Assembly: GCF_902459465.1 (NCBI RefSeq)
Contig: NC_047064.1
Coordinates: 18,476,001-18,540,000, forward strand
Origin: Asterias rubens
Lineage: Eukaryota
DNA: 64,000 bases
Direction of reading: 5' to 3'
Part shown: one piece after another, positions 28,666 to 62,105 of the stretch
Position numbering within the stretch: the first letter of the stretch is position 1
How the letters are laid out: each line of letters opens with the position of its first letter
Program-made: the position numbers and the translations under genes
Notes under the pieces: model-generated
Database searches by the model: none
What the model saw: only the letters and a program-made list of their open reading frames with translations
Told to the model about the DNA's origin: nothing

Positions 28666-28693
28666 TATTGCAAAACAGCTGAGGGAAAGCCCC
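28666..28693 (-). promoter_or_regulatory. DA1 kB + C/EBP-like module
   Basis: Plus strand TATTGCAA ... GGGAAAGCCCC (minus strand GGGGCTTTCCC). Confidence 0.6.
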
Positions 28694-29944
28694 GAATTGA
28701 TCCCTGAAAACACGAAACTCAGATCCTTGAATGCTGCAGGAAATTAGCTGAGGATTATAATTCCCATTATTTTTGATCGTGTTTTCGTGGATTTGGCAAA
28801 TCTCAACGATACACACATAACATTGAACCACCATTATTATTATTATTGACAACAAATAAAAGCAAACATTATTGAATTAAATAGTAACTACAAAATTACA
28901 GAAAAAAAAACTAAATTAAAATACAATTTATAAATACCCCAGACAGTAACAAATATGTATTTATAAGTTGTACATGTTTGTTTGGTTGGAGGATTGGGAA
29001 GTTTTGTGAAAATTTGACATAATTTGTATGGCCTATAAGCTGGCTTTCACAAAGCATTAAGATTCATCTTAAAGGGTCTGGGTACTTTTTGTAAAACAAA
29101 ACACAATGTCCACGGATTTACATTAAACTTAAACAATTTGAAGATAGTGATAGTAGAAAGCTTACCTGAAAATATTACTTGCTGAGGTGCTGTGATTTTT
29201 GAGAAATGAGTCAAAACAATGCCATGAAAATACGTTTCACAAGCAACTTGTTTTACTCGTTTGTCAAAAACTACACCACCTCAGCAAGTAATATTTCAAG
29301 GAAAGGGCTCTTTCTACCATAATTTTCTTCAAACCGAGTAAGTTTGATGTAAATCTGTGTACATTGTGTTTTGTGTCCTACAAAAAGTGTCCAGACTCTT
29401 TACCCAGAATTGCCAATACCATCATTTGTATTGTGACATCACTCTTTGCTTGACATTTGTAGACTGATTTGCAGTGCTTCCAATCCAACTTGAAAACAGA
29501 GTTATATCAGATCGGGTGTGCAGTGGAATTTGGGAATAGAATGTAGCCCATAAAATTAACAAAATATACTGTTGAACCTTGTTTGTAGGACGTATACATG
29601 TACATGTAGGTAAAGTTACAAAAATTGAAATATTAAATATTTCAGTTATTTGTAAACAGCAAAATGGTGTTATAACATAAATGAAATGTACAGAGTATTA
29701 TAATATCATAATAATAATATAATAATAATAATAAAAACAGCATTTATGCAGCACCATATATCCAAAAAATCGCTCAAAGGCGCTGTACATTAAAAGGGCA
29801 AAAAACACTAAACATTATTAAAAGCAAAACAAAGCTAATACATAAGAAATTTATAAAACAAGGCAAAAACTTTAAAAAGTATAAAAAGGTACAATCATGT
29901 ACACATCACATCAAGAAATCCAGGAATGGTAATTTGTTTTTTTT

Positions 29945-30200
29945 ACCCATACCTTGACGTGTGTTAGCACTGTACACTCAGTACTTTCCCGAGTCCTGTG
30001 AATAAATATCACAGGCATATTACTCGGGTGGGATTCAAACCCACGACCCTTGCAATTCTAGAGCAGTGTCTTACCAACTATAATAGACTACCGAGATTGC
30101 CCGGTAGCTAGAGGCAGTTAGGCAGTATACAGTGCTAACACACATCGGTGTATGGCAAAAACCAAAGTTAATATTCTTTATCCCCGATGCAAATTTAACA
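29945..30200 (-). mobile_element. Second tRNA-derived SINE family (copies ~400-520, 11960-12090, 14725-14860, 15585-15690)
   Basis: Recurrent GAATCCCACCCGAGTAATATGCCTGTGA...ACAGAACTCGGGAAAGTACTG motif. Confidence 0.6.
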
Positions 30201-31039
30201 TCTATACCCTTTGTAGTCTGCTGTAGGCCTACTTGACTGGTCGCACCACAAATAGTCGCGACTTATTTTTAATTCTCAAGATGCATTGTGGCAATGTTTG
30301 CCGTTGGCACAATATAGTAAAATACAAGCTGAAAGGATTGAAGGGGATTGTGTCACTGATGTCTGATTGTCTTTTGTAAGTAAATTATGTTGTTTTGAAT
30401 ATTCGTGAGCGACACAATTGGTTCACCAAATGGGTAGTCAGGACAAGTTTGTTTGTAGTCGCAACTTTTTTTTGTAGTATTCGTGGCAGCACAATTAATG
30501 CCCCTTATTTTTGACCGCGCGAGGGCGCTATAAATAGTATTTTGATCACTTCCGGGGGTACACGCGATTCGCCCTGCACAAATTAATAGGCGTTCTGTCA
30601 CTTTTGTTGCGCCGTAGTTTCAATTTGCTTTAGAGGTGGATTATAACGGCTCCTTTAAAAGTCTTATTGTCTGTGATGGATTAGGTGTCTGTGGTTATAA
30701 TGTGTTCCAATCTTTAAAAACTGTTTTGGGTATGAATGAATATACCCCCGGAAGTGATTGAGAGCGCCCTCACGCGGTCAAAAATATGGCCCATTGAGTA
30801 GTTGGAAAACGGTAGTCGCGACTCAACTAATCAATCAATAGTTGGGATAAGGACACTAGTCGCACGAGGTGCCCAGGCCTAGTCTGCTGTGCGAGGCACA
30901 AAATGTTCCTTGTATGTCACCATAAACAAGGGGTTATTTGTAAATAGGTATAATAGGGAAAATGGTGAAGAGTGGTTTTGTTTGCATTTTGTTTATGTAG
31001 TTAAGAGAGTAGCTGGACATTTGGCTCTCTCATGGAAGT

Positions 31040-31350
31040 TGTTTCTGAGTTTCTTACATCCACCAAGGCTTAGCTTTGTAGGTTGGTTCTCTTGCCAACG
31101 GTGTCTGAGTGTATGGTGCTGTAGACCCGTAGTTAGGAGAGTAGCTTGTCATTTGGCTCCCTCTTGGAAGTTGTTTCTGGTTTACCCAGGGCCTTGGTTC
31201 TCTTGCCAACGGTGTCTGAGTGTATGGTGCTGTAGACCCATAGTTAGAAGAGTAGCTTGTCATTTGGCTCACTCTTGGAAGTTGTGTCTGGTTTACCCAT
31301 GGTTCGCTTGCCAACAGTGTCTGAGTGTATGGTGCGGCAGACCAAGGCCT
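31040..31350. repeat. 105-111-bp tandem repeats downstream of DA2
   Basis: Three to four units GTAGTTA(A/G)GAGAGTAGCT...GGTGTCTGAGTGTATGGTGC. Confidence 0.8.
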
Positions 31351-31418
31351 AGAAGTCTTGCTAAATGTTTGGGTTGGGGTTGATGGATAGTCATGCCTGA
31401 CTCGTTGCAATGTACATA

Positions 31419-32390
31419 CTAAGAATATAGTAGATCGAAACTCGATCGTCCAGACCCATTAGCCAGCCAGTATTCCTCAAAAGGTGTTAGTTTTAGGGTA
31501 TCATCAAGTATTTCATCCTGAACCTCGTCTTCGTCCTCGCTCACTTCTTCAGGCCAGTATTCCTCAAAATATTCTTCAGGCCAGTATTCCTCAAAATATT
31601 CTTCAGGCCAGTATTCCTCAAAATATTCTTCAGGCCAGTATTCCTCAAAATATTCTTCAGGCCAGTATTCCTCAAAATATTCTTCAGGCCAGTATTCCTC
31701 AAAATATTCTTCTTCTTCAAAGATATCATGAAGTATTTGATCATGCACCTCGTCTGCTTCCTTTCTCATGGTTATCCATTTAGGAAATCTTTCAATGTCC
31801 AAGTATTTGAGTGCCGTATTCAATGACTCATATCCTGGCTTAGATCGAACCTCTTCCTGCAATTTTTGCATTTTTTGTATGTGAATGTCCAGTAATGATG
31901 TTGTCACAGACTTCCAATTGCTATCACTCATGGTTGACAAGGTAATCCCCTCTTGATACTTTAACTTTCGGAGGCCGTCTCCATCCTTGTAGGTCATGGC
32001 ATAGTGGATGTTAAATATAACCAAAGGATGGTTGTTTATGAATTCTATGATCCGGTCAGCACAATCAACACATGGCGAGTAGTTGATGTAGAGGTCGTAT
32101 TCGGTTTTCTGCTGGCGCATGCGCATCTTGGAAAAGTAGTCTTCAAGTGATAAAGATTGATCGGCTGACTCTATTTCATCTAGGAATGCACACTCGACAT
32201 GTTGTGCTCTTCCGTTTATGTGCTTTGGTTTGCTGTGGTTAATCTCGTTCAGTCTGTTACTTTGAACTACAAGAATGGCCTCCTGTGGCCATTTATATCG
32301 ATCTGATTCCACATGACGCCAATCCCGTACGCCCGTTCTGATCATGATTTCAATGTCATCTTCACAACTGTGCGGACTGCTTCTTGCCAT
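31419..32390 (-). CDS. DA2: AID/APOBEC-like deaminase, 323 aa, with (EEYWPEEYF)-repeat tail
   Basis: QHVECAF ... LYINYSPCVDC ... HYAMTY. The ATG lies 10 nt after the acceptor ttacag|. Confidence 0.9.
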   Translation of the reverse strand: MARSSPHSCEDDIEIMIRTGVRDWRHVESDRYKWPQEAILVVQSNRLNEINHSKPKHINGRAQHVECAFLDEIESADQSLSLEDYFSKMRMRQQKTEYDLYINYSPCVDCADRIIEFINNHPLVIFNIHYAMTYKDGDGLRKLKYQEGITLSTMSDSNWKSVTTSLLDIHIQKMQKLQEEVRSKPGYESLNTALKYLDIERFPKWITMRKEADEVHDQILHDIFEEEEYFEEYWPEEYFEEYWPEEYFEEYWPEEYFEEYWPEEYFEEYWPEEYFEEYWPEEVSEDEDEVQDEILDDTLKLTPFEEYWLANGSGRSSFDLLYS

Positions 32391-32883
32391 GGTATAATTC
32401 CTGTAATAAGAACAGAAAGAATGCCAAAGTTTCAATGTTGAGAGCAATATTTTAGAACTACCTGCTTGAGATTGTATGCTGTTAGTGTAATTCGTTAGTC
32501 ATACTTCACAATAAAACTATTTCATTCACTTATCTTTAACTTAAGTTTCCCTTCTTCACAGTCATAACACTCCCCTCTCGTAGTTGCAAATATTTCAGAA
32601 ATTTTGTTTTAGCTTAAAAAAACAAACAAATAAAACCCAGCTCTTTATAGAAAGGTTAATGGGTGTGTAATGACTTCATACAATTGACTAAACCCAATAA
32701 AAATGGTTGCATAATGTAAAAAAAAAAATCATTTTCATCAGTGTTATTTTGGGCAAAAATTTTGAGTCTCATGAAAAGTCCCAGAGTCGCAAAGGAATGA
32801 AAACATCACTTTGACGTCAACCTTTGGACTTGAACTAAACAAAGCAATGGAAAATATAGTAACAAAGATAAACAATCTTCATC

Positions 32884-33205
32884 CTTGATAGTAACTATAA
32901 ATATAAATATCTCTGAAAAGAGCTGGTTTGGTCTCAACGTTTCTAACAGTATACTTTGCTCGTCTTCAGGAGAAGAGCAGAGTATACTGTTCGAAACGTC
33001 GAGACCAAACCGGCTCTTTTCAGAGCCAACACTCCATCAAAAGAGTTTTTACCCATGGTTGTAATAACAAATAATAATAATAAGACTCGTAATGCGCACA
33101 TATCCACCCTGCTTGTACCCGCAAGTTTACTATTAATTATTTATATTTATAGTTACTATTATTCTCCACACCATGCAAAGCTTCAAACACCATTTAATCT
33201 TCATC
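32884..33205. mobile_element. Second copy of the palindromic hammerhead mini-element, in DA2 intron 1
   Basis: Same arms and centre as 12320-12627; flanking repeat AATCTTCATCC; hammerhead (32932-32973) mutated; nested (ATA)n-GACTCGTAATGCGCACATATCCACCCTGC fragment with TTGTA duplication. Confidence 0.65.
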
Positions 33206-33878
33206 CACCTCAGAAAACACGTCACAAGTCCTTTTGTGCTGGCTTTCTGAGGCACTAGTACTTCAGTGTTTATTTATACTTTTCATTTAAATGGGCCTTT
33301 GCTGGGAACCGTGTAGGGTGCCACCAATGACGGTAAAAAAACAGTAGCTAAAAAGAGGAACAAATGGCTAGATTTTTTAAACAGTTCCAACACATTTACA
33401 GGGGAGAACACATCGCACTTCACGACCAAATGGTAACTAAGCACAAAATATACAAAAACAAATAGTCGACTTAGCTCCAGTGATTTTGTTTAAGATGTTC
33501 TTTGAAAAAATAATTGAGCAAGTTTTTTTTTACTAACAACTAAGGCTACTGTTTCCAAAAGTTCACTACAAATCTGTGACTGTAGACCTTTTTCAACAAT
33601 GATTCTGCTCCCTTTTTTGATACTTTTTGTTGCCATGACATGAATCCTTACTCACTGTGAATAAAGATGCACAAGTATGTTATGTAGTATTTACCTGTAG
33701 CAGTTTCAGCTTCATTAGTCGTCAAGTTTTTGAGAAAATCAAGGAGCCATGTTTTCAGGAGAGTAAGTTTATTGTAAATCTGTGGATAATGTGATTTTGT
33801 ATCCTTCAAGGAAAACACAGTTTTGTCTTCATTTTAACCCATACACATTGAACCAATAATGTGATAATATATACTTAC

Positions 33879-34015
33879 AGTCACTGACAGTTGTTGGTTG
33901 TTTTGAAAGTCCAGTTGGTCTTAGACGGCATAGATTTTTGCCTTTTGAGATCTTTTTAAGGACAGTCCGTTAGTGTAATTGCGGACAGTACTTTCAATAA
34001 ACCTGAGGCGTACAC
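33879..34015 (-). other. Putative proximal non-coding first exon of DA2
   Basis: Donor CT|GTAAGTAT; TATA-like CATAAATA at 34041-34048. Confidence 0.6.
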
Positions 34016-34849
34016 TGAAAACAGTGTTGTGCAACTCGGGTATTTATGTATTCAGCATTTCTGGAACTTTCTTTCACAAATCACTGGTGCATAGATTGTG
34101 GACAATAGAAAGTGCGGTGTTACAGAACTACTGAGGGAACGGTTCACCAAGTGCTTGAGAGGGCAGGTGTCACATGACTTATAGTGGGTATTCAATGTCA
34201 ACATACTGCTTGCAGAACGTTGTGATTGACATCGCAGCGAGAGTTTATAGGTCAACCAACAACCAATGAGACCGGGATGTTAGTAAACATTAGCATAATG
34301 AGCTCCGCCCTAAATTTTGGCAGTTACAGAACCATCAAGGCGCTACTTAGAAATACTCATGTACCGTACGTGTACCATGCAGATGGTAATGTGTATGTAC
34401 AGAGTATGGGTGTGTACATACGCTGTACACGTATTATATGCACTGTGTTATGTATGGGGGTGCGCTGGCGGAATTCAGTGATGGGGACTGGGATTTTGCA
34501 GGTCGCGGCTGGCTGTAGCGCATTGAACAAGGCTACAACATGGGTTGTTTTATGCTGGCTTTCTGAGGCACTAGTACTTCAGTGTTTATTTATACTTTTC
34601 ATTTTAATGGGCCTTTGCTGGGAAGGTGTGCCACCAATAATGGTAAAAATAATGGTAAAAATGTAGTTGCTCAAAAGAGGAACGAATGGCTAGATTTTCT
34701 AAACAATTCTCTAAACACATTTACAGGGGAGAAAACATCTCACTTTATGACCAAATGGTAACTAAACACAAAATAAACGAAAACAAATAGTCGACTTAGG
34801 GGCCATTCATAATAGTCAATGTTTAAAAATTTCGATTTGTTTTCGAAAT

Positions 34850-35475
34850 TGTTTGTAGGTACAATCAAAATGAAATTGGCAAGCACTAAAACTTTGTACA
34901 AAAGGACTCCAACATCAGTAGTTTATAGTTGTTCTTGGCAACAACTTTGTAGGTACAATCAAAATGAAATTGGCAAGCACTAAAACTTTGTACAAAAGGA
35001 CTCCAACATCAGTAGTTTATAGTTGTTCCTGGCAACAACTTTGTAGGTAGGTACAATCAAAATGAAATTGGCAAGCACTAAAACTTTGTACAAAAGGACT
35101 CCAACATCAGTAGTTTATAGTTGTTCCTGGCAACAACTTTGTAGGTACAATCAAAATGAAATTGGCAAGCACTAAAACTTTGTACAAAAGGACTCCAACA
35201 TCAGTAGTTTATAGTTGTTCCTGGCAACAACTTTGTAGGTACAATCAAAATGAAATTGGCAAGCACTAAAACTTTGTACAAAAGGACTCCAACATCAGTA
35301 GTTTATAGTTGTTTCTGGCAACAACTTTGTAGGTAGGTACAATCAAAATGAAATTGGCAAGCACTAAAACTTTGTACAAAAGGACTCCAACATCAGTAGT
35401 TAATAGTTGTTCCTGGCAACAACTTTGTAGGTACAATCAAAATGAAATTGGCAAGCACATAAAACTTTGTACAAC
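34850..35475. repeat. ~95-bp minisatellite, about 6.5 copies
   Basis: Unit TTTGTAGGTACAATCAAAATGAAATTGGCAAGCACTAAAAC... Confidence 0.9.
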
Positions 35476-35476
35476 A

Positions 35477-35805
35477 GTTTTTAGTTTGATAGTTTTTAGT
35501 TTGATAGTTTTTAGTTTGATAGTTTTTAGTTTGATAGTTTTTAGTTTGATAGTTTTTAGTTTGATAGTTTTTAGTTTGATAGTTTTTAGTTTGATAGTTT
35601 TTAGTTTGATAGTTTTTAGTTTGATAGTTTTTAGTTTGATAGTTTTTAGTTTGATAGTTTTTAGTTTGATAGTTTTTAGTTTGATAGTTTTTAGTTTGAT
35701 AGTTTTTAGTTTGATAGTTTTTAGTTTGATAGTTTTTAGTTTGATAGTTTTTAGTTTGATAGTTTTTAGTTTGATAGTTTTTAGTTTGATAGTTTTTAGT
35801 TTGAT
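35477..35805. repeat. 15-bp perfect tandem repeat (AGTTTTTAGTTTGAT) x~22
   Basis: Directly visible; produces the spurious VFSLI ORF. Confidence 0.95.
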
Positions 35806-36450
35806 ATGTCCCTTAAGACCCTTACATGACCCATTTTTAATTGTTCAGTGACGGCGAACAGACCTGCTTTGAGCCAGACGATGATCTGGACCAGCATGGT
35901 ATTTTATTTCCTTTTTGTTTTTACCATGTTGTGAAAAAAAAAAAAAAGAATTTCGATTTTCAGTTATTTCTTTTGACCCACCCACCCACAATTTCGAAAA
36001 AATATCAATTTTTGTTTTCATTGACTATTATGAATGGCACCTGTTTAAAATGTTCTTTAAAAAAAATAATTGAGCAATTTTTTTTTTACTAAGGCTACTG
36101 TTTCCAAAAGTTCACTACAAATCTGTGACTGTAAACCTTTTTCCACAATGATTGTGCTCCCTTTTTTGGATACTTTTTTTTCCATGGCATGAATCCTTGC
36201 TCACTGTGAATGAAGATGCACAAGTACAGTGTATGTAGTATAATACCTGTAGCCGTTTCAGTTTCATTAGTCGTCAAGTTTTTGAGAAAATCACAGAGCC
36301 ATGTTTTCAGGAGAGTAAGTTTATTGTAAATCTGTGGATAATGTGATGTTGTATCCTACAAAAAGTACCCAAACCCTTTACAAGGAAAACACAGTTTTGT
36401 CTTCATTTTAACCCATACACATTGAACCAAATGTGATAATAAATACTAAC

Positions 36451-36580
36451 AGTCACTGACAGTTGTTGGTTGTTTTGAAAGTCTAGTTGGTCTTAGACGG
36501 CACAGGTTTTTGCCTTTTGAGATCCTGGCAAGGACAGTCCCTTAGTGTGACAGCACTTTCAATAAATCTAAGGTGTAAAC
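36451..36580 (-). other. Duplicated distal first exon of DA2
   Basis: Near-copy of 33879-34015 with donor CT|GTTAGTAT; no CDS between it and DA2. Confidence 0.55.
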
Positions 36581-36635
36581 TGAAAACAAAGTTGGGCAAC
36601 TTAGATATTTATTTAGCATTTCTGGAACTTTTTGG

Positions 36636-36663
36636 TATTGCAAAGCCACCATGGGAAATCCCC
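36636..36663 (-). promoter_or_regulatory. DA2 distal kB + C/EBP-like module
   Basis: TATTGCAA ... GGGAAATCCCC. Confidence 0.65.
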
Positions 36664-37028
36664 AAACTGACTTTTTCCCCCTAGCTGTCATAAAAACGTA
36701 TACTCACACACACACATGCAGAGTATAGCAAAAGTCATGCAACGCACTTACTGCATGCATCGTACACTGCATGCACAACACTGATTATTATTCATGAGCC
36801 ACCGCAACGCAGCCTCTGATTGGCTCCACCGGAAAGTCGGGGGAGATTTGCCGAAAAACAATAAAAAAGTTAAGACCCGTCGTTGCAAATAACCAAGACC
36901 ATGGTGAGATCTAAATCAGAGAAACAGAGCGCCCGCTAGCGTTCGTTCATTACAAGCGTGTACAGTTTTTGCCGTGCATAATCGGAACGTTGGTTGTGTG
37001 TGACCGCGCCATGTTACCGCTGTGTGAC

Positions 37029-37094
37029 TGCTGCCATGTTACACTGAAAGGACTCTGTATATATACAGAGTCCTTTCAGTGTAACATGGCAGCA
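37029..37094. repeat. Perfect 66-bp spacer-less palindrome
   Basis: TGCTGCCATGTTACACTGAAAGGACTCTGTATA|TATACAGAGTCCTTTCAGTGTAACATGGCAGCA. Confidence 0.9.
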
Positions 37095-37199
37095 AAATTT
37101 TATTTAAAAAATATATATATTTCTACGGATCAGTTAAGGATATAACAACAAATTAACAACAAATATAACGACAAATTGTGGTCAAGCCAGTCCCTTCCC

Positions 37200-37430
37200 T
37201 TCACCCCCCCTTTTTGTCCCCCTATTCATTGTTTACCCCCTGCTTTTTTCTGTATGCTTTCTAACCCCATTCATGTATTTCCACTTCACTGCTTATGTTT
37301 CACTTAGTTACCTGTTCATGTTTGTTGTGTTGTCATTTAGCCTTCGAGAAAGACTCTGCTAGGGTCGAAACGTCAGGCCATAACTATTTTTTGCATTTAT
37401 ACTCTCGGTCCAATTGGTTGGTAAGTTGTT
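37200..37430 (+). mobile_element. Penelope pseudo-LTR remnant with hammerhead-like variant
   Basis: GCCT-TCGAGAA-AGACTC-TGCTA-GGGTC-GAAA-CGTC-AGGC at 37340-37378, within a pyrimidine-rich tract like the Penelope 3' region. Confidence 0.45.
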
Positions 37431-38159
37431 TGCAACAGCTAGTTCTATTTTCTCAACAAATTAACATCACAACTAATTCAAATATTAGCAACAATAAACA
37501 ACTCTTTAATTATAGTTTTTAATTATCCTTTTGCTGAAACATTAAATACAGTGGAAATTTAAAAAAATAAACAATGCAGTGTACACATTAATTTAGGTAA
37601 AGTAATAAATAACTAGAAAAACATATTTTTAAACAATGCACTTTATACAGTTGAAACAAGGTTTGTTACCTGAAAAGATCACTGGTTTGTATGCATTATG
37701 TTTAGATGTATCACAAAGTGTGGTCTTTAACAATTACCAATAGTGTCCAGTGTATATTTAAAGGCACTGGACACCTTCAAAATTGTCAAAGACCAATATT
37801 CCCACTTGGTGTATCCCAACATATATGCATATAAAATAACAAACCTGTGAAAGTTCCGAGTGAGTAGGGATCCATGTCAGGGGCACAAACATGATCTACA
37901 AAAAGTGGCAAAATCTTTGAAAACTTGCATTTTCGTAGGTTTGTACCTTTTCGTCGCGGTTTCTGCTACATTAATTACTGCAAACAAATTGTACCAAGCA
38001 CTGACCTGTACTACGTTCATTCATTCATTCATTTTTAGTTAAAAAAACAAAAAACTGGCAGAACAAGATAAAGAATTGTTAGTTAAAAAATGTAGATTCA
38101 AGATATATAAGAGCAATTATTAAAAAATGGTTGGTACATGTAGGCCTACAGATATACAG

Positions 38160-38545
38160 TACATGTCCAGATAAAATTACAAAAATAGAAAAACTTTTCT
38201 GGTAAAATGGCAAAATGGCAATCACAAAATAAATTATTATAGGAATACTTCTATACATTGAAAATCCCCTTTTATAAAACCCCCTCTAACACAAAACCTG
38301 TTTGGATATTAACTGTTCATCCCCCCCCCCCCCCCCCCCCCCCCCCACCACCCGACGCAGTAGGTCCAGATAAAATTACAAAAATAGAAATACTCATCTG
38401 GTAAAATGGCAAAATGGCAATCACAAAATAAATTATTATAGGAATACATCTATACATTGAAAATCCCCTTTTATAAAACCCCCTTTAACACAAAACCTGT
38501 TTGGATATTAACTGTTCACCCCCCCCCCCCCACCCCCCACACCCG
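38160..38545. repeat. ~190-bp tandem duplication
   Basis: GTCCAGATAAAATTACAAAAATAGAAA...CCCACCCGACGCAGT appears twice. Confidence 0.8.
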
Positions 38546-38751
38546 ACGCAGTTGTCGCGAAGAAAAGCACCATTCTTAGACTTTGGTTTAAGAGTCTTGG
38601 ATTGAGCTACATCAAGTTTGGACAGTCCAATGCTCAAGGACACAAGTGCCATGGCTGGGATTGGAACCCACACTTGAATTCAATGATCTTTAACCACCCA
38701 GCTATGACACCTTACATGTACATACTTTGTGGATGCGACCTTCCCCTTTTG

Positions 38752-39480: not shown

Positions 39481-39744
39481 GCTTGTTGGATACTGTAAAA
39501 AAAAAAAAAAAAAAAAAAAAAGATTCTTGATGTCAGTTGTTGTTGGTGTTTTACGAATTGAACATTCACGCTTCACATCAAAATAAACTATAAGAGAGGT
39601 TTAGCAACACATATTTACCTAGAGCGTCAACATAATAAAAATAAATATCAAAGTCTTATAGCGCACGTACTAAACGCTGAGTATACAAACTTTCACAAAG
39701 ATAGGTTATTGCAGTGATGAATTCTGAGACCCAATTATGTAGCA

Positions 39745-40015
39745 CCTTATTATGGGTTTACAAGGTGCTACGGCGCATACATGTACAGCAGCCACAGCCA
39801 GGAACACTGGGGCGAACCCCTTCTCTTTTCGATAGCATGCGCTGCACAACACAGGGGACCAACGACTTTACGTCCCGTCCGAAGGACGAAGCAATGGTTA
39901 AGTGTCTTGCCCAAGGACACAAGTGTCACAGCTGGGGATTCGAACCCACACTCTGCTGATCAGAAACATGAGAGTTTGAATTCGGTGCTCTATAATCGCT
40001 CGTCCACGACACGAC
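39745..40015 (-). mobile_element. tRNA-derived SINE (related copies ~9232-9500, 45725-46058, 12700-12980, 10590-10700)
   Basis: tRNA-like head with B-box GGTTCGAATCC on the - strand and a shared body CAAGGACACAAGTGTCAC. Confidence 0.65.
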
Positions 40016-40720: not shown

Positions 40721-40907
40721 AAAAAGTACTGGACAACACGGGTATTTATACAACATTTCTAAAATTGGATTGTAGGCCTACATGTAATTAAAATGTGCAG
40801 AGACTAGACAGTAGATGAGCTCATTTCCAAGTTTATTTCTTACAACTGTGGTACGTATTGCACAGTTTTTGAGGCAAGCATCAAAGCGTTATTGCTGAGA
40901 ACTGTGG

Positions 40908-50502: not shown

Positions 50503-52544
50503 ACCCCTATACCTTTTTTTTTTTTTTGGGTGCCCTTCAGAAGTCATTCAATGGGGAACGTTGTCATCCAGCACTTTTGCATAGCAAAATATTTTGACAC
50601 CAAATTTTGTGCACAAAGAACATTGGTAATATTGAGTAGCAAATGACAACTTTTGAGTAGCAACTGACACATTCTGCTATATACAACAAATGTTCACTGC
50701 TTAATAACAAAAACCTATGCATCCACCCAGTGGTGCAGTAGGTTAAGAAACAGGGTTGCCTAGTGGGCCATCCACCCCCCCCCCCAAGTGTCTTAGCCAG
50801 GAATTTGAAAGTGGGAGTGCAAACTGAAAAAGTGGGAGTGCAACCTAAAATCACTACAAAAAAATAGATACGTGTGCGTAGCACACAACACGAGCTCGCA
50901 GCGCCAAGTCTGTCTCACCCCCCCCCCCCCCCCACCCCCCTCTTAAGGGCCCTGGAAGCATTTCTGGTACCTATTTCTGTTACAAGTAAACTATTTTGAT
51001 TTAATTTTTTATTTTTTTTTCAACTCGAAAATGAGAGGCTTTAAAGCACAGATATTATACAGGTGATCGACGTCCACTATACATTATTAAACTCTATAAA
51101 ATGTGTCTGGGTCAATAGGCCAGTTCAAAGCAGTTACTTGGACCATGGAGCTGTGCTTGGACCCATTTAGCCTGAAATGGTTCAAAAGTGATCAAATAAT
51201 GCAGTACAAGTTTGCTGTCAACAAAATATTTTTTGGCATGTGTTACTCTTGATACAAAATTTTGCTTAAAGACTAAAAAAAAAATGAAGAGGTATTGAAG
51301 AAATTAAGAGTTATCATTTACTAATGTTAATTCTATCCATTCTTGTCCATTCGATTTCAGAACAATAGGCCTAAGGTCGTGAAGCTGATAATAGTTTTTG
51401 TATTTAATTTAGACAAATCAATTAATATGTAAAATAATTATTCACACAAGTATTTGCAACCAATCAAAATGCCAAGAGTGATTTACATGTACCATAATTG
51501 TTTGCTTAATGTAAACTGACTGATCATGGTAATTAATATTTTCCTTTGTATGTGTTTAGGTTTCATAACGTTTAAGTCTTATAGGTTGTTTAATTGTTGA
51601 AACTGGGTCAAAGGCAATTTGTAAACAGTCTGCGGTGAATAAAGAACAAACAGTTACAAAAGACAGTGCCATTTAAGTAGTTCCACTGGGCACAAAAACG
51701 TACCATGCATTGAAAAATAAATTTGGGAGGTCTATCCCCCCCCCCTACAGCAAAACCGACTTGAGATTTGAAAAGAAACATGAACCAGTTTTTGAACCTT
51801 TCGAGCGGAAAATAAACATCGTTTTGTCAACTGCATTAACACCCAAGAGATGCAAACATTGAAATCCAAAAAAGTCTCACCGGCTCACCGTTTACGCAAT
51901 TTAGGGCTGTAGAATCATCAATAATGTTTTTATAGATGGTTGCTGTAAAATAAAATCATCAAAATGTCACATAATTAGCGAAAAAATGATTAAAAAACCC
52001 AAAAGCGGCAAAAGGCCAGCGTGTACGTGTTTCCAGCCGTTGCAACTATCAAATCTTCGTGATATTGTCGCACAATGTTGTAAGTAGACTGGTGCTTTGT
52101 TTATAGCAACATTTTACTACGACGAAGCATAAGGATCCAGTCTATCCATAAATTATAAACAACCAACATATACGGATCAGGCAAATCTTTCGACGGTGGA
52201 GGTAGTCGTGCTTCGACGTACATCCAAAGATCGTCACGAAGAACACAAAAAACTAACCCAGAAAATGATGGGACAGTGACAAGTAAATAGAGCATTCCTG
52301 GCACAAACTAGGCATACTACTGCAGTGCATAGGCATGATGCAGTTTGGAATGCGATCGTGGCGTACAATCATGCTCCCGACGTGCTACTCCTAGAACTAT
52401 TTCAGTTTCGTCCGGCTGAAACCGAAATAGTTCTAGGAGTACCGACGTGCCAGGACCCATTCAATGCCTGTAGGCGCCTACAGAGGGGAGGGGATGGGGG
52501 AGGGAATCGTTAGGGATTCAAAAACGTTCTTGTGAGAATGTATT

Positions 52545-53372
52545 TTGAAACGTAAGCGTAGTTGCAAATCTTGAAACGTAAGCCTAGCTTGACTCGGGAT
52601 TGAAAGCGTTATTTTTTATTATAGCGTAACAAATCTAAAAAATGTATATGGATTGTATAGTAGCTGCATAGCTTGGAACGTAACCATATCTTTTGGAACG
52701 TAAGCATATCTTGAAACGTAAGCGTAGCTAGGTATCTTGGAACGTAAACGCAGCTGCGTATGGAGCGTAAGCGTAACTTGACTCAGGATTGAAGCGTACC
52801 TTTTGTAAATATAGCGTAACTTGAGAAGGAACGTAAGCAAAAACTTGGAATGTAGGCGTATCTTGGAACGTCATATCTTGGAAGGTAAGCGTAGCTGGAT
52901 ATCTTGGAACGTAAACATAGCTGCGTATGGAACGTAAGCGTAACTTGACTCAGGATTGAAAGCGTACCTTTTGTTATTATAGCGTAACTTGACGAAACGT
53001 AAGAGTATCTTGTAATGTAAGCATAGCTGAGAAGCTGTGTAGCTTCGTAACCTTATGTTTTGGAACGTAAGCATATCTTGGAACGTAAGCGTAGCTAGGT
53101 ATCTTGGAACGTAAACGTAGCTGCGTATGGAAGGTATACGTAACTTGACTCAGGATTGAAAGCATACCTTTTGTAATTACAGCATTACTTGAGAAGGAAG
53201 GTAAGCAAAAACTTGGAATGTAAGTGTAGCTTGATATCTTGCAACGTAAACATAGCTGCATATGGAACGTAAGCGTAGCTTGACTCGGCTTGAAAACGTA
53301 CCTTTTGACATTATAGCGTAACTTGAAGGAACGCAAGCGTAGCTGAGTAGCTGCGTAGCTTGGAACGTAACC
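52545..53372. repeat. Degenerate GGAACGTAAGCGTAGCT-type tandem array with higher-order units
   Basis: Directly visible; no coherent ORF. Confidence 0.8.
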
Positions 53373-56300
53373 AAATAATACCTCAACAATCTCAAAAATA
53401 ACACTTCATTCACAGAATTAAAAAATATTTTTAGACAAAATTATGCTTTGAGAGAGTTTTGTTGAACTTTTTTTTTCAACCTTTTGTACAAAATTATTAT
53501 TCAACTGTTCTTTTTTCAATCGGGGGCTCCGGTTTTTTTAATCCCTTTTTTCTTCTTCATAAAACATTTTTAAATCTACTCACACAATAACACTGTCAAT
53601 ATAACAAAATGCAGTATTTCTACATTTGGACATCATCAATCTTTTTTTATTGTTACCTGAAAACTCCTAGCAAAATAAAATTAGGAGCCATGAAACAAAA
53701 CAGAGCATAATATTGGAACGTTGTGATCATAAGAAATAACGGATTTGACACGAGGTGTACCGACTGACAAACCCACGATGACAAACATGTACTCCCAACC
53801 CCTCCCAAGCTCACGGCGAGACCCGCAAGCTTGGAGTTCATAGCGCCTGGGATTACACCTCCAGCCCCCCACGAGACATGGCATGCGCTGTATGGTATAA
53901 TGCCCCGAGGCTTACGTTGTGATTGCGCCACGCCTTGGGCTATACACGGACTCTTTGAATGCGAATCTTACGTAAGATTTTTCACCATTATTTACATTTT
54001 GTAGCGATAACTTGAATACATGATCTTTTTCGTCAATTACTCGTTAATAATTTTGTAAAAAAAAAAGATTTAAATTTGGTTTGGTAAGTTACTGACGGCT
54101 GGAAGTAAAACTAGCCCGGAAGGTCACGCGATTGTTTGTACCACTTTTTGGTTAGAACAATCACGCGACCTAAGTTTTTGTTTTAAAATGCTCAAAAACG
54201 GCAAAATTTGATGATTTTTTTTATGGACCGTTCTTCTTCATACCTGGAAGACTGCTGAATTCAGTTCTTAGTCTATTTTGTAGCCCAAATAGCCCTATTC
54301 GGCCGGTGTGTCCCTTTAAAACAAAGTCTGTGTGTCTCGCTTGCGTTGTGTAATTTGCACGTGCATTGTGTAATGTGTGGTTTGTGCGTTGTGTCTTGTG
54401 TGGTCGCAATGTGGTCAGCGTTTTCGAGGCAACTTCGAATGATTGTTTTATGGTTGTGTAGTTGAAATTTTGATTCAAAAGGAAGAAGGAAATCTGGTAA
54501 AACCAAATCTAATTTTACTCACTGCTGTTTAAACTGTTCAACAACAACAAAATAATAAAAGAAGTTCAGTAATTTTCACTGAAATTATTATACAGCACGG
54601 CTTCACCCAAGCCATGCATAAAAAATTTGCCCGTGTTTTCAGCCCAACTGGCCGTGCTAACACCCCCCCCCGGAAGTCGTACATGTAACTTATATTTGAT
54701 TTGTTTAAAATTGAAATTGAAGTTAAACAGGAAACAAGAAAAGGAAAGACAACAGCCATGATGTTCTTTCTACCTAAGTCAGATTTATTTTGCTCTTGAA
54801 AAAATCTGAAAAAATTGTGTTTTAATACAGCTTGAAATCTATACTATTAAAAGCTTAACCCGCGCCGTCTTGGAATTGAAAATTAGAAGGTCCAGTGGCA
54901 TGGCATCCTTGTGGAATCCAACACGGTTATGTCGTTACAGACGTCGGGTTGAAGTCTACAAAACCCTGAACCGAACTCCCTCTTACGAGTTGTCTGATTG
55001 GCTGGAGTCACGAGCGATATCTCCTTACATGTGTGGTTGTCTGGTTTTGATATGGGCCACCTGTTGGTCTAAGGGGGGGGGGGGGAGCTGTACGCTGCAC
55101 ACAGAGCCACCTCTTTAGGTTTGAAGTGGGTGGCAACCTTGGACTCCCATTAACATTCCAGAGTGACTCATTGATGTTTCGTAGAGGGGTAAATAGCATT
55201 GTGTATATACCATTTTGTACAGGGGGGTTTAATTTCGCATGTTAAATAAAAAACATTAGGCTTTAATACATGCATCTGTTACATATGTGTTTATTACAAT
55301 TAAGTCACTCATGTAGGCCTACCCAACTTTCCAGCATTTTTTAAACGTATCAAACATCAGCAACCCATTGTTGTGAAACTTTATTTGTTCCATTTAACTC
55401 TGCACCGTTAGTGGTACAGTCCATATGTCATCCCCCACACATAGAACGTACACACGCAAAAGTTGAAACATTTTCAAAAAGAAAGTAAATACATTACTGA
55501 TTCTTTTCATATACATTGTATAGGTTTTGCCAGTTAAACCTACAAAAGAGTACATGAAATCACCGTTTAAGAATAGTAAGCTTTCATAGTTACGAACTTT
55601 GTGAAACATCAACGGCTGTTTTGAAGCTGTAAACGAACATTCCATTCAAAGTTCTGAAGCAACAAAATTGTTAGAACGCAGTTTGGTCCGGACTCAGGAT
55701 GTAGATTTTGCCAAATCCGTTTTGTATTAAGCAATCGGCCGTCGGGTTTTGTTATCGAAAGAGCCTTCATGTGCAGCTGAATCGGGTACTTTTTACGAAT
55801 TTCTCCTTACAAAATTAACCAAACTGGCCTACAAACCCTTAAAACAACAAGGCAAATGTTTTCTGAAAGTGAATTAAGTGAGAGGATGTAGGGGTAGCTG
55901 GCATACAAACCCTCAAAATAACTAGGCAAATGTTTTCTGAAAGTGAATTAAGTGAGAGAATGTAGGAGTAGTTATTTAAGACCAATAAAATTACCGTTTC
56001 TATTATTTTAGTTCGTAGGGTTCCACAGATAATTATGATAACATATATAATTGGATGTTTTATCAGGGGACTTCGTCACGCGGGGCGCGCGCCCCGGCGG
56101 ATGTTGACCAGAAAGTTTACATGAGAATTAATTGATATGAGAATAAACTAAAAATTAATGAGGCCGACGCTCTGTTACTCCAAAAAGCGGTGGCAAAAAC
56201 AGTAGATTAGATGTTGCACAGCATGTTCCGAAAAATCGCTTTATTTGGTGCTCAGACAACTTTGTTTGCGTCGTTGGACGTACGCTCAATAAATTACGAT

Positions 56301-58118
56301 GAATGGGGCCTTAGATTCTAAAATCGTGTACACCTCATTGGAAACAAAGCAAACAATATTCAACAGTTATAGCAACCAATCATTAAATATTTTTATTTTC
56401 AATACAATTTTGCAGAAATTGACTTTGTCGTTCAAGTCCATACCAACTGGCGCGTTTTTTTATATTTTTATCTGCTGTATACCAGAACTTCTTCGAAGCT
56501 TCCTTTTCAGTCAGATAAACTCCGCGGCTATTAGTGGCTGTGATTATGAGTTTGTTTTAAAAGAGGATACCACTTTCATACAAGCCTTTTTAGTCGGATT
56601 TCTTCTCTGCTATTACTATTAGCAGCGGTGATAATTGTTGAGGGGGGAGACCAGACTTAGACCACTCAAATCCGTGGCTATCGGTGACTATGGATTTGTT
56701 GCTAAGGGTACCAAATACCACTGCTGATTCCACATTCAGCGTGATATACATTGTCCGATTGGCCCATCTCCATATAAATTAACCAAAACTGGATGTACAG
56801 ACCCTCAAAATAACAAGGCAAATGTTTTACAAAGTTCGTAACTATAATGAAAGCAGTTTGGGCGGGACTCAGGATGTACATTATGCCAAGTGTAACTGAA
56901 TTATACCAAATGTGCTCAACACAATAAAATAAGTGTGTCATTGGAGCAGTGTATGTGCTATATTTTTAGTCGTCTAAGCATTATTACCCTTACAGTCATC
57001 TTAGCTGGGAAATACTCAGTGCAGTGGATAAAATTGACACAATGACAAAAGCCCATTGAATTTAAACTATGCGTAAAAGAGGCGAAACATAATCCACATT
57101 ACGGATAATGCGTTGGCCCACTCGATCAACACTAAAATATTACGAAATACCCTACATATCATGCCAAGTACCATCATTGCCAAGTATACCCATCCCCAAT
57201 ATTAAAGCTCAACTCCAGAAACAAACACCAATTCCTTTAGTTGGAGACTGCAAGAGAGAAGGTGAGGAGAGGAGGCGATGCGTCGCGACATTTTACAACT
57301 AAGTTGTGCACGCTCAACAATTAATTTTTATCAAAATACAACATTAATGACAAATTTCCATACCGATCATAAATACAATTTCTTATCCAATACTACGAAA
57401 TGATTATTACCTGTAAGAATACCTCCCTTGCCCCCACATTATCTTTTACAACATGTGTATACTAGAATCCTCCTCATCTAGCGGGGTGCCGCGCGCCCGC
57501 TAGTTTCTATTAAAGCCATTGGACCCTTTCGTTAAACAGTGTTGTCCTAAGGCCCACACTTCGTGTATCACAACTTATATATAAAATAACAAACCTGTGA
57601 AAATTTAGGCTCAATCGGTCATCGGAGTCGGGAGAAAATAATGGGAAACCCACCCTTTTATCCGCATTTTCGCCGCGTCATGACATGTGTTAAAATAAAT
57701 CCGTAATTCTCGACATCGAGAGTTTATATTGTTTTACTGTTTTCTCAAAAAGTAAAGCATTTCATGGAATAATATTTAAAGAGAAGTCTTTCACCACTAC
57801 CTTCTGTAAACCCTGAAAGTTATTTGTAAATACGGAACTTTTTTCTTTTCTTCCTGTACCGAAAGGGTCCAATGGCTTTAAAGCCTACACCATGTGTACA
57901 TGTGCAGTAGGTCAGCACTTGTGTAATGCAATAAAATATTCCTACTTATTTCCAGCGGACCAAATATCTTGCCAGAAACAATTAAGTTGCCCCTTCTTAA
58001 AATTGTCACACCTTATAAAATGTGTGTTTGAGATTGTGCAGGCCATGCAAAAAAAAGTTGTGTTTGAGATACATGTCATAGTCCATGATTTCAGATTATA
58101 CACAATTGCATGGCAGTA

Positions 58119-58127
58119 GGGAATTCC
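58119..58127. promoter_or_regulatory. Upstream kB-like site (DA5 enhancer-like module)
   Basis: GGGAATTCC in the context TGCATGGCAG...CACC, shared with 46602. Confidence 0.4.
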
Positions 58128-58312
58128 ACCTGTGTGAAGTTGAACAGGAAGGAAGGCAAATGAAGTATAATGTAAGTTGTATAGAGTCCATCCATGAATA
58201 TACCCCGATCGATGCCATGTTTATGGACATGTGTTTTTGATGTCTAATGATCGATGTCATGTTTATGGGCATATGTTTTTGATGTCTAATGATCGATGTC
58301 ATGTTTATTGGG

Positions 58313-59492
58313 TGTCACGGTGTTGATGAAACAATGAAAGATGTGGACAAAATTGTGTTTGTTCGACCCGGTAGTTTTATTCGCACTCAGCGAGGAGCAG
58401 GTTAACTATAGAACAACAAATAATGAAATAGATAATTAATATATAAATACATAAATTAGATTACTCAATAATCAAATCAAAGATATAAGCAGGGTGTTTA
58501 AATAAACACGCAATCAGAGGTTTCCGGAAAGATTGAATAAAACGCAATCGATGGCTTACGGAAAGATTATACGAAAATGAACAGACAATCGTTTCCAAAA
58601 GAAGATTAAAGAAACTATAGCAAATTATTAAAGCTTGAACAAATCCACTTCTGCAATTCTATATCAAAAGATGAACAGTACAATTATCGACTTTACTAAA
58701 TTAACACTTACAAATTGTTACCGGGAAATTCACATCAACACTGTGGGAAACTTAACGGCGATGTACGGGGTTTACGGGAGTTTTCGGCGGCATACTGATA
58801 TATAACAAAACTGTTGGGAAATACACACATATAAACTCATTTAGAGATAGTAATTAAGAGGCGTTACCGCAAACCTTTCTAAATCGTATTACCACCATGT
58901 AACGTTACAAATCCTACTAATACACACACGATAATAAAAGCAATTACTAGAGACAAGTACGTTGGGTACACAAAATAGGATTTAGAAGAATAAACTAGCT
59001 TTGCCTAGTGGCACCATAAATCTTATTATCAAAATCTAGCGACGGCTCTATTTTGTGCCCCACTTAAACAGCATTAAGAGGAACCAAAAATAACTACAAA
59101 AAGCCTAGATCATTGAAATGGAAAGGAAGCAATTTTACAGTAACCAATACGTTAATACAATCGGAATAAGTGACATTAAATATTATACAATGAAGAAAAT
59201 ACTACTTACGAAAACGGCGATGAAAGCTAGCTGGGGTTGACTAAGAAAAATACGGCGAAGTTAACCAAACGAAACCAGGAAAAGAAATGAACCTAGAAAT
59301 ACCGGCACCCAGGTACCTGCGTATAGTAAATAGGGCTTGCCACACCTTAAACCAAATTCCTAAGATGCCCGCAGGCGATTGGCTGCGTGCACTGACCTTT
59401 GACTTTAAACAAATAAGGATAAGCTAGTAAACGTAAGAGAAACGTATAAATTATAAACAATAATATAAATACATGACCGGTGGGAGATGACA
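58313..59492. mobile_element. Solo LTR (~1.18 kb) inserted in a ~40-bp minisatellite
   Basis: TGTCA...TGACA termini, 5-bp duplication (TTGGG/ATGGG); it splits the TTTTGATGTCTAATGATCGATGTCATGTTTATGGGCATATG array. Confidence 0.7.
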
Positions 59493-60107
59493 ATGGGCAT
59501 ATGTTTTTGATGTCTAATGATCGATGTCATGTTTATGGGCATATGTTTTTGATGTCTAATGATCAATGTCATGTTTATGGGCATATGTTTTGGCTATCTG
59601 ATAACATAAAACATTCAAACAAAAAATTGTGCAGCCAAGTGGTTAACTGACGTATCATGCAAGGATATTGACAAAGTTCATGTACTGCATGCAGGAATGC
59701 ATAAAATGTAAAAAAAAAAAAAAAAAAAAAAAAAGGCTAAACTACCCCAAAAGACGGTCGACTTCAAACTTTGTGACGTCAAATGGAAACTATCTATTTA
59801 GATGTGACTGATGTCATTTACTTAATTCAGATTACGCCTTCACCTATTGTTGTTGGTAAGCAGTTAACACTTAGGCCTATTCTTACATAATTTTCAATAA
59901 ATAAAACAACCCAATGCAATATTTACAGGCAAATTGAGAAAATCTGTAAAACTTAAATTCCTGTCACGCCCTTTACGCTAAGTTTTCCATAGGGTCAAAA
60001 CTGCATTCACATTCAACAGTGTTTAAATGCGCGTGCTTTTGTGTTTATTGCAATTGAATGTTTCCCTGATTTTTGATGCTGCCTGATTTTTTAATCACAT
60101 ACATTGA

Positions 60108-61505
60108 CTACTTTTTTGAAGGTCTCAAAGTCTCGGTCTCGGACCCTCCGGTCTTGGTCTCGAGTTGCCGGGTCTTGGTTTTGGTCTCAACTTGAGGAGT
60201 CTTAGTCTTGGTTTTGGTCTTGGGCTTGGTCTTGGGCTTGGTCGCGACTTCCTGTGCCTTGGTCTTAGTTTTGGTTTTAACTTGTCGAGTCTTGGTCTTG
60301 GTCTCGACTTGCTGTGTCTTGTTCTTGTTTGTGGTCTTGGTCTTGGTCTTGGTCTTGGTCTTGGAAACAACAACGGCAGGGGGCAGAGCAGGAAAGGGGG
60401 AAGGGCAGGGTAGTGGGATGGTCAGGGTAGGGGTAAGAGCAGGGTAGGGGGAAGAACAGGGCAATGGGAGGAGCAGGGCAGGGGGGAGAGCAAGGCAGGT
60501 GGAAGAGGAGGGGAGGGGAAAAAGCAGGGTAGGGGGTAGAGCAGAGGAGGGAGAAGAGCAGGGGAGTGGGAACAGCAGGGCAGGTGGCAGAGCAAGGCGG
60601 GTGGAAGAGGAGGGTAAGGGGAAGAGCAGGGAAGGGGGAAGAGCAGGGTAGGGGGCTGATGTTGTAATAAGGGGGAAGAGCAGAGCAAGGGGAAGGGCAG
60701 GGTAGGGAGCAGAGAAGGGCAAGGGGCAGAGCGGGGCAGTGGGACAGGGCTGTCTTTTTCCCCGTCCAGATCTTGATGTCCTCAATCCAGACTTGCCTTG
60801 GGCCCCCTCACTCTCATTGTACAATTCCCTTTGTATTTTTGCAAGTGTTTCTTTTGCAGTCTTGTCTGCTTCCTCTCTCCATACTATCCATTCCTTAGAG
60901 TCCTCAATGTCGTAGTGTTTGACTATTTTCGCTAATGACTTGTTCCCCGACTTATCACAACGATTTTGTTTCAAAATTTTGATAGTTGGTCTGCAAATGT
61001 CTAGAGTTGCTGTTATCACAGACTGCCATGTATCGCTATTCATGGTTGCCAAGGTTATGCCCCTTTGATGCGTTAACTTTCTGAGGCCATCTCCGCCATC
61101 CTTGTATAACATGGCATAGTGGATGTGAAATTCAACGGAAGGTTGGTTGCTTATGAATCTTACGATTCGGTCCGCGCAATCAACACATGGTGAGTAGTTG
61201 ATGTACAGTTCGTATTCCGTCATCTGCCGGGACATCGGAAGAACAGAGTCTTTGAACTCTGAGTTCCAACCACCAGACTCATCCGACTCGAGTTCATCTA
61301 GGAAGGCGCACTCGGCATGTTGTGCTGGCTTTCTTTGCCTCAGTCTGCTGTGATAAATCTTCTTCTGTTTGGTACTTTGAACTATGAGAATGGTTTTCTT
61401 TTGCCATAAATATTTTTTTTCCTTTAAATGTCTTGGGTCCTGTACGCCTGTTCTAAGTATGATTGCAGCGTCCTCTTTCCATCGGTTGTCCACACAGCTT
61501 ACCAT
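60108..61505 (-). CDS. DA6: AID/APOBEC-like deaminase, 465 aa, with Pro-rich and Lys/Thr-rich repeat-derived tail
   Basis: QHAECAF ... LYINYSPCVDC; acceptor 13 nt upstream of the ATG; the ORF stays open through two repeat elements. Confidence 0.85.
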   Translation of the reverse strand: MVSCVDNRWKEDAAIILRTGVQDPRHLKEKKYLWQKKTILIVQSTKQKKIYHSRLRQRKPAQHAECAFLDELESDESGGWNSEFKDSVLPMSRQMTEYELYINYSPCVDCADRIVRFISNQPSVEFHIHYAMLYKDGGDGLRKLTHQRGITLATMNSDTWQSVITATLDICRPTIKILKQNRCDKSGNKSLAKIVKHYDIEDSKEWIVWREEADKTAKETLAKIQRELYNESEGAQGKSGLRTSRSGRGKRQPCPTAPLCPLPFSAPYPALPLALLFPLITTSAPYPALPPSLLFPLPSSSTRLALPPALLFPLPCSSPSSALPPTLLFPLPSSSTCLALPPALLLPLPCSSPYPALTPTLTIPLPCPSPFPALPPAVVVSKTKTKTKTKTTNKNKTQQVETKTKTRQVKTKTKTKAQEVATKPKTKPKTKTKTKTPQVETKTKTRQLETKTGGSETETLRPSKK

Positions 61506-61911
61506 AGTGGTACGATGCCTGTAAAAGTGCAGACATGCACATTATGTTTATTTGGTCATTTGAAAAGCACATCTTTTTCTTTTAGGTCAGCACGCATGTG
61601 CGCGGCACCAAGGTATAATTTTTTTAAATTTTTTTTTCACTTTTGAGGTTTGTGCATGCCGTGAGTTTCAATGGTAAATTGAACCTTTGTGTCGGTTTGT
61701 TGAAACAAAAATTGTGAGTTTTGTTGCAAAGTTACCTAGCCTTATCATCATAATTTAAAAAGTAAGGCTCCTGAAGCATTGCAACTTCATGAGAATGTAC
61801 GCCTCGGTTAGCATTGTCTAAACATGCACAAGAATTAAAACTTAAAAAATACTGGTTTTCTCCGCAGTGTGTCAGTTTGTGTCGGTGACGATATGATCAG
61901 TATGTACTTAC

Positions 61912-61985
61912 AATTTGTAGATGGTTGGTTCTGCCAGTTGGTCTTTAAGCTTGCCTTTTGTTTAAGTTTAAATTAAAAAAATTGT
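61912..61985 (-). other. Putative non-coding first exon of DA6
   Basis: Donor TT|GTAAGTAC at the homologous position. Confidence 0.55.
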
Positions 61986-62077
61986 GGCTTACACTGAAGA
62001 AAGCATGAGCAATTTATGCAACAATTTATGTCATATATGTAGACTATGGACCATGCACTTGGCAATAGAAATGGAGG

Positions 62078-62105
62078 TATTGCAAGCCAGCTGAGGGAAA
62101 GCCCC
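62078..62105 (-). promoter_or_regulatory. DA6 kB + C/EBP-like module
   Basis: TATTGCAA ... GGGAAAGCCCC. Confidence 0.65.

Follow-up and report, generated by a model that had tools for sequence, protein, structure and literature searches.

What switches on a tandem array of genes for mutator-like enzymes in a sea star? Invertebrate enzymes resembling AID and APOBEC have been proposed as ancient innate mutators, and their uncontrolled expression endangers the host genome. The locus considered here is a stretch of 64,000 nucleotides from Asterias rubens (NCBI RefSeq assembly GCF_902459465.1, contig NC_047064.1, positions 18,476,001 to 18,540,000; hereafter the window). From 22 kb to the window end it carries seven AID/APOBEC-like open reading frames (ORFs) on the minus strand, genes 1 to 7, six with complete domains and the seventh leaving the window. 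Pfam families of the AID/APOBEC clade (NAD1, SNAD4, and APOBEC_N) match above cut-off with E values of 1e-13 to 1e-17, and the zinc motifs (H-x-E and P-C-x-x-C) are invariant across the array as HAE and SPCxDC. A block of 31 bp accompanies these genes, and we lean towards reading it as a composite cis-regulatory element, of Rel plus C/EBP type, common to the tandem sea star deaminases. So sharply defined an element in every gene of the array offers a direct experimental handle.

Read in the direction of the minus-strand genes, each of which it precedes, the module is GGGGnnnTCCC-N9-T[T/C]GCAATAC (Table 1). A preliminary description of this DNA had reported six 11-mers of the kB type, the binding site of Rel/NF-kB, and all six were recovered as exact matches to GGGANNNCCCC, starting at 28683, 36653, 40980, 45315, 49728, and 62095. 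The window holds seven such matches, all on the + strand, as compared with 0.71 expected from shuffles, and none of 100 shuffles reached seven; the seventh match, at 63125, has no partner block and was treated as chance. Each 11-mer had also been placed some 9 to 10 bp from the word TATTGC(A/G)AA. That word does stand 8 nt before five of the six kB sites on the + strand, but the sixth copy (62077) reads TATTGCAAG, ending in G, and the gap between the 11-mer and the GCAAT block proved constant: exactly 9 nt in all seven copies, filled by a spacer of variable sequence. This is the fixed short two-site distance looked for in a composite element. The promoter of gene 7, just beyond the window end, has the same module, as seen in a metagenome scaffold 98% identical to gene 7 (L003:146-176). 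In gene 3 the GCAAT block has been multiplied by a 55-bp tandem repeat (40833-40981, 2.7 copies), so that 392 nt now separate the kB site from the exon-1 donor; tandem repetition of a block is what happens with clustered factor sites.

Conservation was measured on an ungapped, module-anchored alignment of the six paralogues. Sixteen of the 22 block positions are invariant (8 of 11 in each block, with mean pairwise identities of 0.88 and 0.89), as against none of nine in the spacer (identity 0.45), where the alignment is unambiguous, and none of 22 in the flanks (12 nt before and 10 nt after the module); identity in spacer and flanks is 0.41-0.45. By Fisher's test the blocks differ from the spacer with p = 2.5e-4 and from spacer plus flanks with p = 5e-9. 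BLAST similarity is found directly upstream of the kB site in 0 of 15 gene pairs and downstream of it within subfamilies only. The earlier claim that the module is kept while its flanks diverge thus stands. In the best 31-column coding stretch, which surrounds the zinc-binding cysteines, 22 columns are invariant; the module thus comes close to the catalytic core in its degree of conservation.

Paralogous copies do not make six independent events of six occurrences, and the common letters might simply be left over from tandem duplication or gene conversion, with no function at all; the synonymous baseline is, moreover, fairly high, with 15 of 36 third positions of conserved codons invariant. 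We consider this explanation very improbable. Conversion tracts would have carried the spacer too, in which not one position is invariant; the flanks are unalignable in 15 of 15 pairs; and only 2 of 12 four-fold sites are invariant. Synonymous sites were set aside as a neutral yardstick (the four-fold sites being too few and the third positions of conserved codons too constrained), and the contrast between spacer and blocks was used instead. Redundant copies, finally, did decay. In genes 1 and 2 the promoter/exon-1 unit occurs twice, and the proximal unit combines a good GTAAGT donor with a decayed module; the proximal copy of gene 2 is 85.6% identical to the distal one over 611 nt. Both proximal module homologues have lost otherwise invariant bases and serve as a natural control.

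Asterias amurensis, at about 94% identity in non-coding DNA, is too close for decisive footprinting and lends weak support only. The modules of genes 3 and 4 are identical there at 31 of 31 positions while bases nearby differ (about 10% of the bases flanking the gene 4 module). A perfect GGGGAATTCC within a common 160-nt element upstream of genes 3 and 4 (41406-41560 and 46600-46760) is mutated or deleted in that species, so kB-like words outside the module are unprotected; judged by this loss, the distal site is probably not functional. The array itself differs between the two species: the A. amurensis locus (L001 10900-16400, compared with window 23000-38600) has no counterpart of the gene 2 coding exon and no gene 1 distal module, and the gene that comes next there resembles gene 1 at only about 75-80%. 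On the strength of these comparisons, the block is a real, selectively maintained cis-element.

Which proteins might read it? On the sense strand the 11-mers are GGGGCTTTCC, GGGGATTTCC, and GGGGAACTCC, and all six copies fit the consensus GGGRNWYYCC. The preliminary description had noted a varying centre between constant GGG and CCCC ends, and this was borne out: there are three centre variants (CTT, ATT, and AAC), all of which keep the consensus. The half-sites GGGG and TCCC are invariant, positions 5-7 vary within N-W-Y, and the two changes in gene 3 remain inside the allowed W and Y classes. Across the window GGGRNWYYCC has 15 matches, as compared with 3.81 expected, and 11 of the 15 come from the six modules. 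Two fixed half-sites around a free centre are the pattern expected for a dimer, and p50-like NF-kB dimers favour 11-bp kB sites with two 5-bp half-sites. According to protein-binding arrays, the site preference of NF-kB is nearly unchanged from sponge to human (PMC5700166), so the vertebrate consensus can reasonably be applied to a sea star. Going by this fit, the cis-element is probably Rel-bound.

The mechanism we propose is as follows. The distal half, an 11-bp kB site of p50/NF-kB type in which a single central bp separates two 5-bp half-sites, would most likely bind a Rel-homology dimer; the proximal half, always 9 bp on and with an invariant GCAAT, would most likely bind a basic leucine zipper (bZIP) partner of the C/EBP kind. 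The constant spacing, about 19 bp centre to centre, suggests that the two bind cooperatively, like the partners in vertebrate kB/C-EBP composites. The element stands about 185-390 nt ahead of the donor of a non-coding first exon and forms the 5' limit of what the paralogous promoters still have in common. We infer the binding proteins, transcriptional activation, and infection as the signal from the DNA sequence; on that basis the array is probably switched on together, with infection perhaps as the trigger, for which the preliminary description had proposed a TLR/Rel pathway.

The position of the module relative to the first exon follows from the gene structure. A conserved acceptor, TTACAG, precedes each coding exon, 11-15 nt ahead of the ATG, and upstream of the acceptors lies a homologous exon-1 end, which contains AGACCAACTGGAC and is followed by GTAAGT or GTGAGT. 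Splice joints in public RNA contigs establish a non-coding exon 1 for genes 4 and 5. The distance from kB site to exon-1 donor is 184 nt in gene 6, 193 in gene 2, 220 in gene 4, 224 in gene 5, and 392 in gene 3. The interval of 180-390 bp given as usual in the preliminary description therefore holds for genes 2 to 6 (with the donors of genes 4 and 5 confirmed by RNA) but fails for gene 1. Genes 4-6 have a TATA-like word (CATATTAAG or ACATATATG) 25-35 nt downstream of the module, and gene 2 has none; such a word would fit a start site after the module. The AGACCAACTGGAC block, in the 35-45 nt that precede each exon-1 donor (27364-61970), is conserved in register in all first exons, and in four of six genes it contains a Myb-type CAACTG.

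Several observations weigh against a Rel plus C/EBP-type element in the promoter, beginning with the identity of its second half. When compared by eye with the C/EBP dyad consensus (ATTGCGCAAT, TKNNGNAAK, or TTGCnnAA), one half-site, GCAAT, is invariant and the other half is variable; TKNNGNAAK is matched in only two of six copies (genes 1 and 3), and C/EBP does not explain the invariant AC after GCAAT. As a match of sequence, the NF-kB plus C/EBP-like pairing first proposed thus holds for kB in all six copies, but for C/EBP it is reduced to a single invariant half-site. EBF, Su(H)/RBP-J, STAT, octamer, Fox, Sox, NF-Y, and an ATF4-C/EBP composite were also compared by eye, and none fits all six copies. 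The DNA element could instead be real and read by other factors, setting tissue-specific or constitutive expression rather than induction by infection: NFAT or an Ikaros-type reader of GGGAA at the first half, and an unknown reader of GCAATACC at the second. Such an arrangement would account for a second block that is invariant past the C/EBP half-site (GCAATAC) while its other half varies freely; it would also suit the presence of deaminase transcripts in several unselected RNA data sets, and the finding that only one of several AID-like genes of the sea urchin responded cleanly to Vibrio (PMC5956068). We nevertheless regard it as unlikely. In the gene 3 variant, GGGAGTT on the + strand, the GGAAA core required by NFAT is missing, yet the GGG/CCC halves for a Rel dimer are kept; the invariance of both halves of the 11-mer argues for a dimer; and, as described below, deaminases of two other genera also have kB-consensus sites upstream.

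A second set of adverse observations comes from RNA. Three spliced gene 4 contigs cross the module, with 5' ends at 45414 (run X1), 45442 (X5), and 45751 (X6). In each of four runs, 45-52% of the words of 45096-45760 are present. Such shares (0.45-0.52) are consistent with one 5' boundary for all four at about 45400-45440, which lies 90-120 nt upstream of the kB site. An unspliced gene 5 contig likewise runs across the gene 5 module. The module may lie in a transcribed 5' untranslated region rather than in an upstream promoter. The earlier placement upstream of the first exons is accordingly uncertain: a non-coding exon 1 is indeed spliced in genes 4 and 5, but in gene 4 the module is inside the spliced contigs. 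The RNA libraries also contain unspliced and intergenic contigs at similar depth, and in one A. amurensis gene model (578 amino acids) two adjacent deaminases are joined, suggesting read-through from the neighbouring gene. It is possible that the upstream coverage derives from read-through and from unspliced or intergenic sequence, and that the contig ends derive from upstream haplotype differences.

A transcribed module could act as RNA, either as a protein-binding site in the untranslated exon 1 or as a GGGG/UCCC hairpin with a variable 3-nt loop, controlling translation or stability. The inclusion of the module in spliced gene 4 contigs, whose 5' ends cluster 90-120 nt upstream, is in keeping with this, as are the variable positions of the 11-mer, which would form the loop of a possible 4-bp hairpin, and the continuation of sequence conservation downstream through exon 1. 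We think an RNA-level role improbable all the same. The predicted structure has only 3-4 pairs (-4.3 kcal/mol) with no covariation, and the same strand offers no complementary partner. A random conserved block would match the kB consensus with a chance of about 1e-3, and the changes in gene 3 keep that consensus; for an element acting in RNA, the fit to so information-rich a DNA motif would be coincidence. The block copies in gene 3 are direct, not inverted, as expected of clustered DNA sites. The upstream coverage, too, can stem from read-through of the kind to which the fused gene model and the intergenic contigs point. Long contigs from each of the four RNA runs span the interval 46028-47548, between genes 5 and 4, at a depth like that of coding exons; this coverage may represent a 2-kb 3' untranslated region of gene 5, read-through, or contaminating DNA.

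The remaining points on the adverse side concern gene 1 and other species. The intact module of gene 1 (28683) lies 1.3 kb from the conserved first exon, which comes after the decayed copy, and is followed by only about 60 nt of exon-1-like sequence with no conserved donor. The gene 1-like gene of A. amurensis is preceded only by a degenerate copy of the module. The exact module architecture was not found in Acanthaster or Patiria, and a second Acanthaster deaminase, set as a prospective test, has no kB consensus in 4.3 kb upstream.

Evidence from these two genera also bears in favour of a Rel-bound element. Sites of kB consensus are enriched upstream of three of four Patiria and Acanthaster deaminase genes: three 10-kb upstream stretches hold seven, as compared with 0.73 expected (0 of 500 simulations), and 30 kb downstream of the deaminases hold one. 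Several of these sites have a TTGC/GCAAT-type site within 4-25 nt. A duplicated unit in Patiria, about 140 nt before a candidate donor, has TTGCAnAnGCTT directly before GGGATTTCCC, with GCAAT 18-19 nt after, and a second Patiria gene has GGGAATTCCC, then TTGCGAAAC after 23 nt. A homology search with the promoter unit against the Acanthaster and Patiria loci gave nothing above noise, and a strict search for kB plus GCAAT in 3 kb upstream gave no match in either genus. Taken together, this support from other genera is suggestive, not decisive. An exact-pattern scan of metagenome contigs for the module found no match, and protein searches for sea stars of intermediate distance returned only Asterias, Acanthaster, Patiria, and one fragmentary assembly (contigs of 1.3-1.4 kb, short of the promoter). 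In Acanthaster (L004 3500-3800), 6.5 kb upstream of the syntenic deaminase, a G-rich stretch contains GGGGAGTTCCC-N9-AATTGC, two more AGTTCCC words, and then TTTATAAG; it could be a distant promoter or a repeat.

Composites of kB and C/EBP sites are well known from the inducible immune genes of vertebrates. Like the kB / C/EBP (NF-IL6) composites of IL-8, IL-6, and COX2, the sea star module sets a Rel-consensus site beside a TTGC/GCAA site of C/EBP type, promoter-proximal and at a fixed short distance; the gene 5 copy reads TTGCAAAT, like the IL-8 site. Unlike in those composites, the blocks are 9 bp apart rather than abutting, one C/EBP half-site is invariant, and the module, known here from sequence alone, is possibly downstream of the start. 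C/EBP-beta physically contacts NF-kB, and the two factors cooperate (PMC3628980 and its references).

The same enzyme superfamily supplies a second comparison: mouse Aicda needs an enhancer, region 4, with sites for NF-kB, STAT6, and Smad and two indispensable C/EBP sites (PMC3628980). The combination of NF-kB and C/EBP sites is what it would share with the sea star module. In contrast, the Aicda enhancer lies 8 kb upstream, with about 100 bp between its NF-kB and C/EBP sites; the two elements have no homology in sequence, and AID is only a distant relative of the sea star proteins. The likeness may be convergent. The module bears on the age of NF-kB/C-EBP control of vertebrate AID and APOBEC3, which may be old or convergent. 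That Rel/NF-kB plus C/EBP wiring of AID/APOBEC mutators is an ancestral deuterostome feature common to the sea star module and the Aicda enhancer, with the array as a single infection-triggered regulon, seems to us doubtful.

Among invertebrates, the closest parallels are the tandem, lineage-specific arrays of AID/APOBEC-like genes: sea urchin SpAIDL and brachiopod LaAIDL (Liu et al. 2018) and the AAD arrays (Krishnan et al. 2018). These genes are expressed in tissues that meet microbes (PMC5956068, PMC5889660), and sea urchin SpAIDL2, which is AID-like, rises 24 h after injection of Vibrio (Liu et al. 2018, PMC5956068). Unlike the present analysis, neither study analyses promoters or treats sea star genes; Liu et al. 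2018 (PMC5956068) use neither the word 'promoter' nor the term 'NF-kB'. The searchable literature on invertebrate AID/APOBEC-like genes covers arrays, enzymatic activity, and one Vibrio-induced urchin gene, with no promoter analysis (PMC5956068, PMC5889660), and a search of it for such genes in sea stars turned up no paper. Set against these systems, and as far as its conservation can tell, the module is a well-supported phylogenetic footprint with a plausible reading, not a new mechanism.

Table 1. Features of the deaminase array, its modules, and its first exons (positions are those of the window unless another sequence is named)
Feature	Position	Strand	Details
Deaminase array, seven genes	22123..63947	-	ORFs and Pfam matches
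Gene 1, coding exon	22123-22917	-	
Gene 2, coding exon	31419-32390	-	
Gene 3, coding exon	38752-39480	-	
Gene 4, coding exon	43379-44632	-	
Gene 5, coding exon	48134-48793	-	
Gene 6, coding exon	60108-61505	-	
Gene 7, coding exon	63303 to beyond 64000	-	
Gene 1, module, distal copy	28663..28693	-	GGGGCTTTCCC-N9-TTGCAATACCA
Gene 2, module, distal copy	36633..36663	-	GGGGATTTCCC-N9-TTGCAATACCA; homologous donor G at 36460
Gene 3, module	40960..40990	-	GGGGAACTCCC-N9-TCGCAATACAA; predicted donor G at 40588
Gene 4, module	45295..45325	-	GGGGATTTCCC-N9-TTGCAATACCA
Gene 5, module	49708..49738	-	GGGGCTTTCCC-N9-TTGCAATACCT
Gene 6, module	62075..62105	-	GGGGCTTTCCC-N9-TTGCAATACCT; predicted donor G at 61911
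Gene 1, proximal promoter/exon-1 copy	27150-27620	-	conserved exon-1 end and donor G at 27364
Gene 1, proximal decayed module	27546..27576	-	in proximal promoter/exon-1 copy
Gene 2, proximal promoter/exon-1 copy	about 33471-34150	-	donors 33878/33888 (donor G 33888)
Gene 2, proximal decayed module	34115..34145	-	GGGG half lost, GCAAT changed to GTAAC
Gene 4, transcribed 5' exon including module	45096..45442	-	RNA contigs
Gene 4, intron 1 (GT..AG)	44646..45095	-	spliced contigs, runs X1, X5, X6
Gene 4, exon 1 end and exon 2 start	45096; 44645	-	exon 2 starts 13 nt before ATG at 44632
Gene 5, intron 1	48807..49504	-	spliced contigs, runs X2 and X6
Gene 5, exon 1 end and exon 2 start	49505; 48806	-	
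ATIC (AICAR transformylase/IMP cyclohydrolase), exons	14259-16567	+	tail to tail with array; Acanthaster L004 19679-20966

The wider context of the array was also described. The nearest protein in public databases is an uncharacterized protein of A. amurensis, 95% identical. A profile built on the six complete domains retrieves mammalian APOBEC3 proteins at about E 1e-12, as well as single genes in Acanthaster and Patiria. The purine-synthesis gene ATIC adjoins the array and is also the neighbour of the Acanthaster homologue; because it neighbours the deaminase in both Asterias and Acanthaster, the locus is syntenic. Synonymous divergence (dS) between the paralogues is 0.31-1.87, and by this measure they are old. 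One genomic contig from a metagenome (L006) resembles gene 4 at 95.7% over 1.2 kb and gene 2 at 99.5% thereafter; the contig represents a recombinant allele or else an assembly chimera. The first intron of gene 1 holds a Penelope-like retroelement on the minus strand (23773-26118), with an ORF of 781 amino acids that contains reverse transcriptase and GIY-YIG domains.

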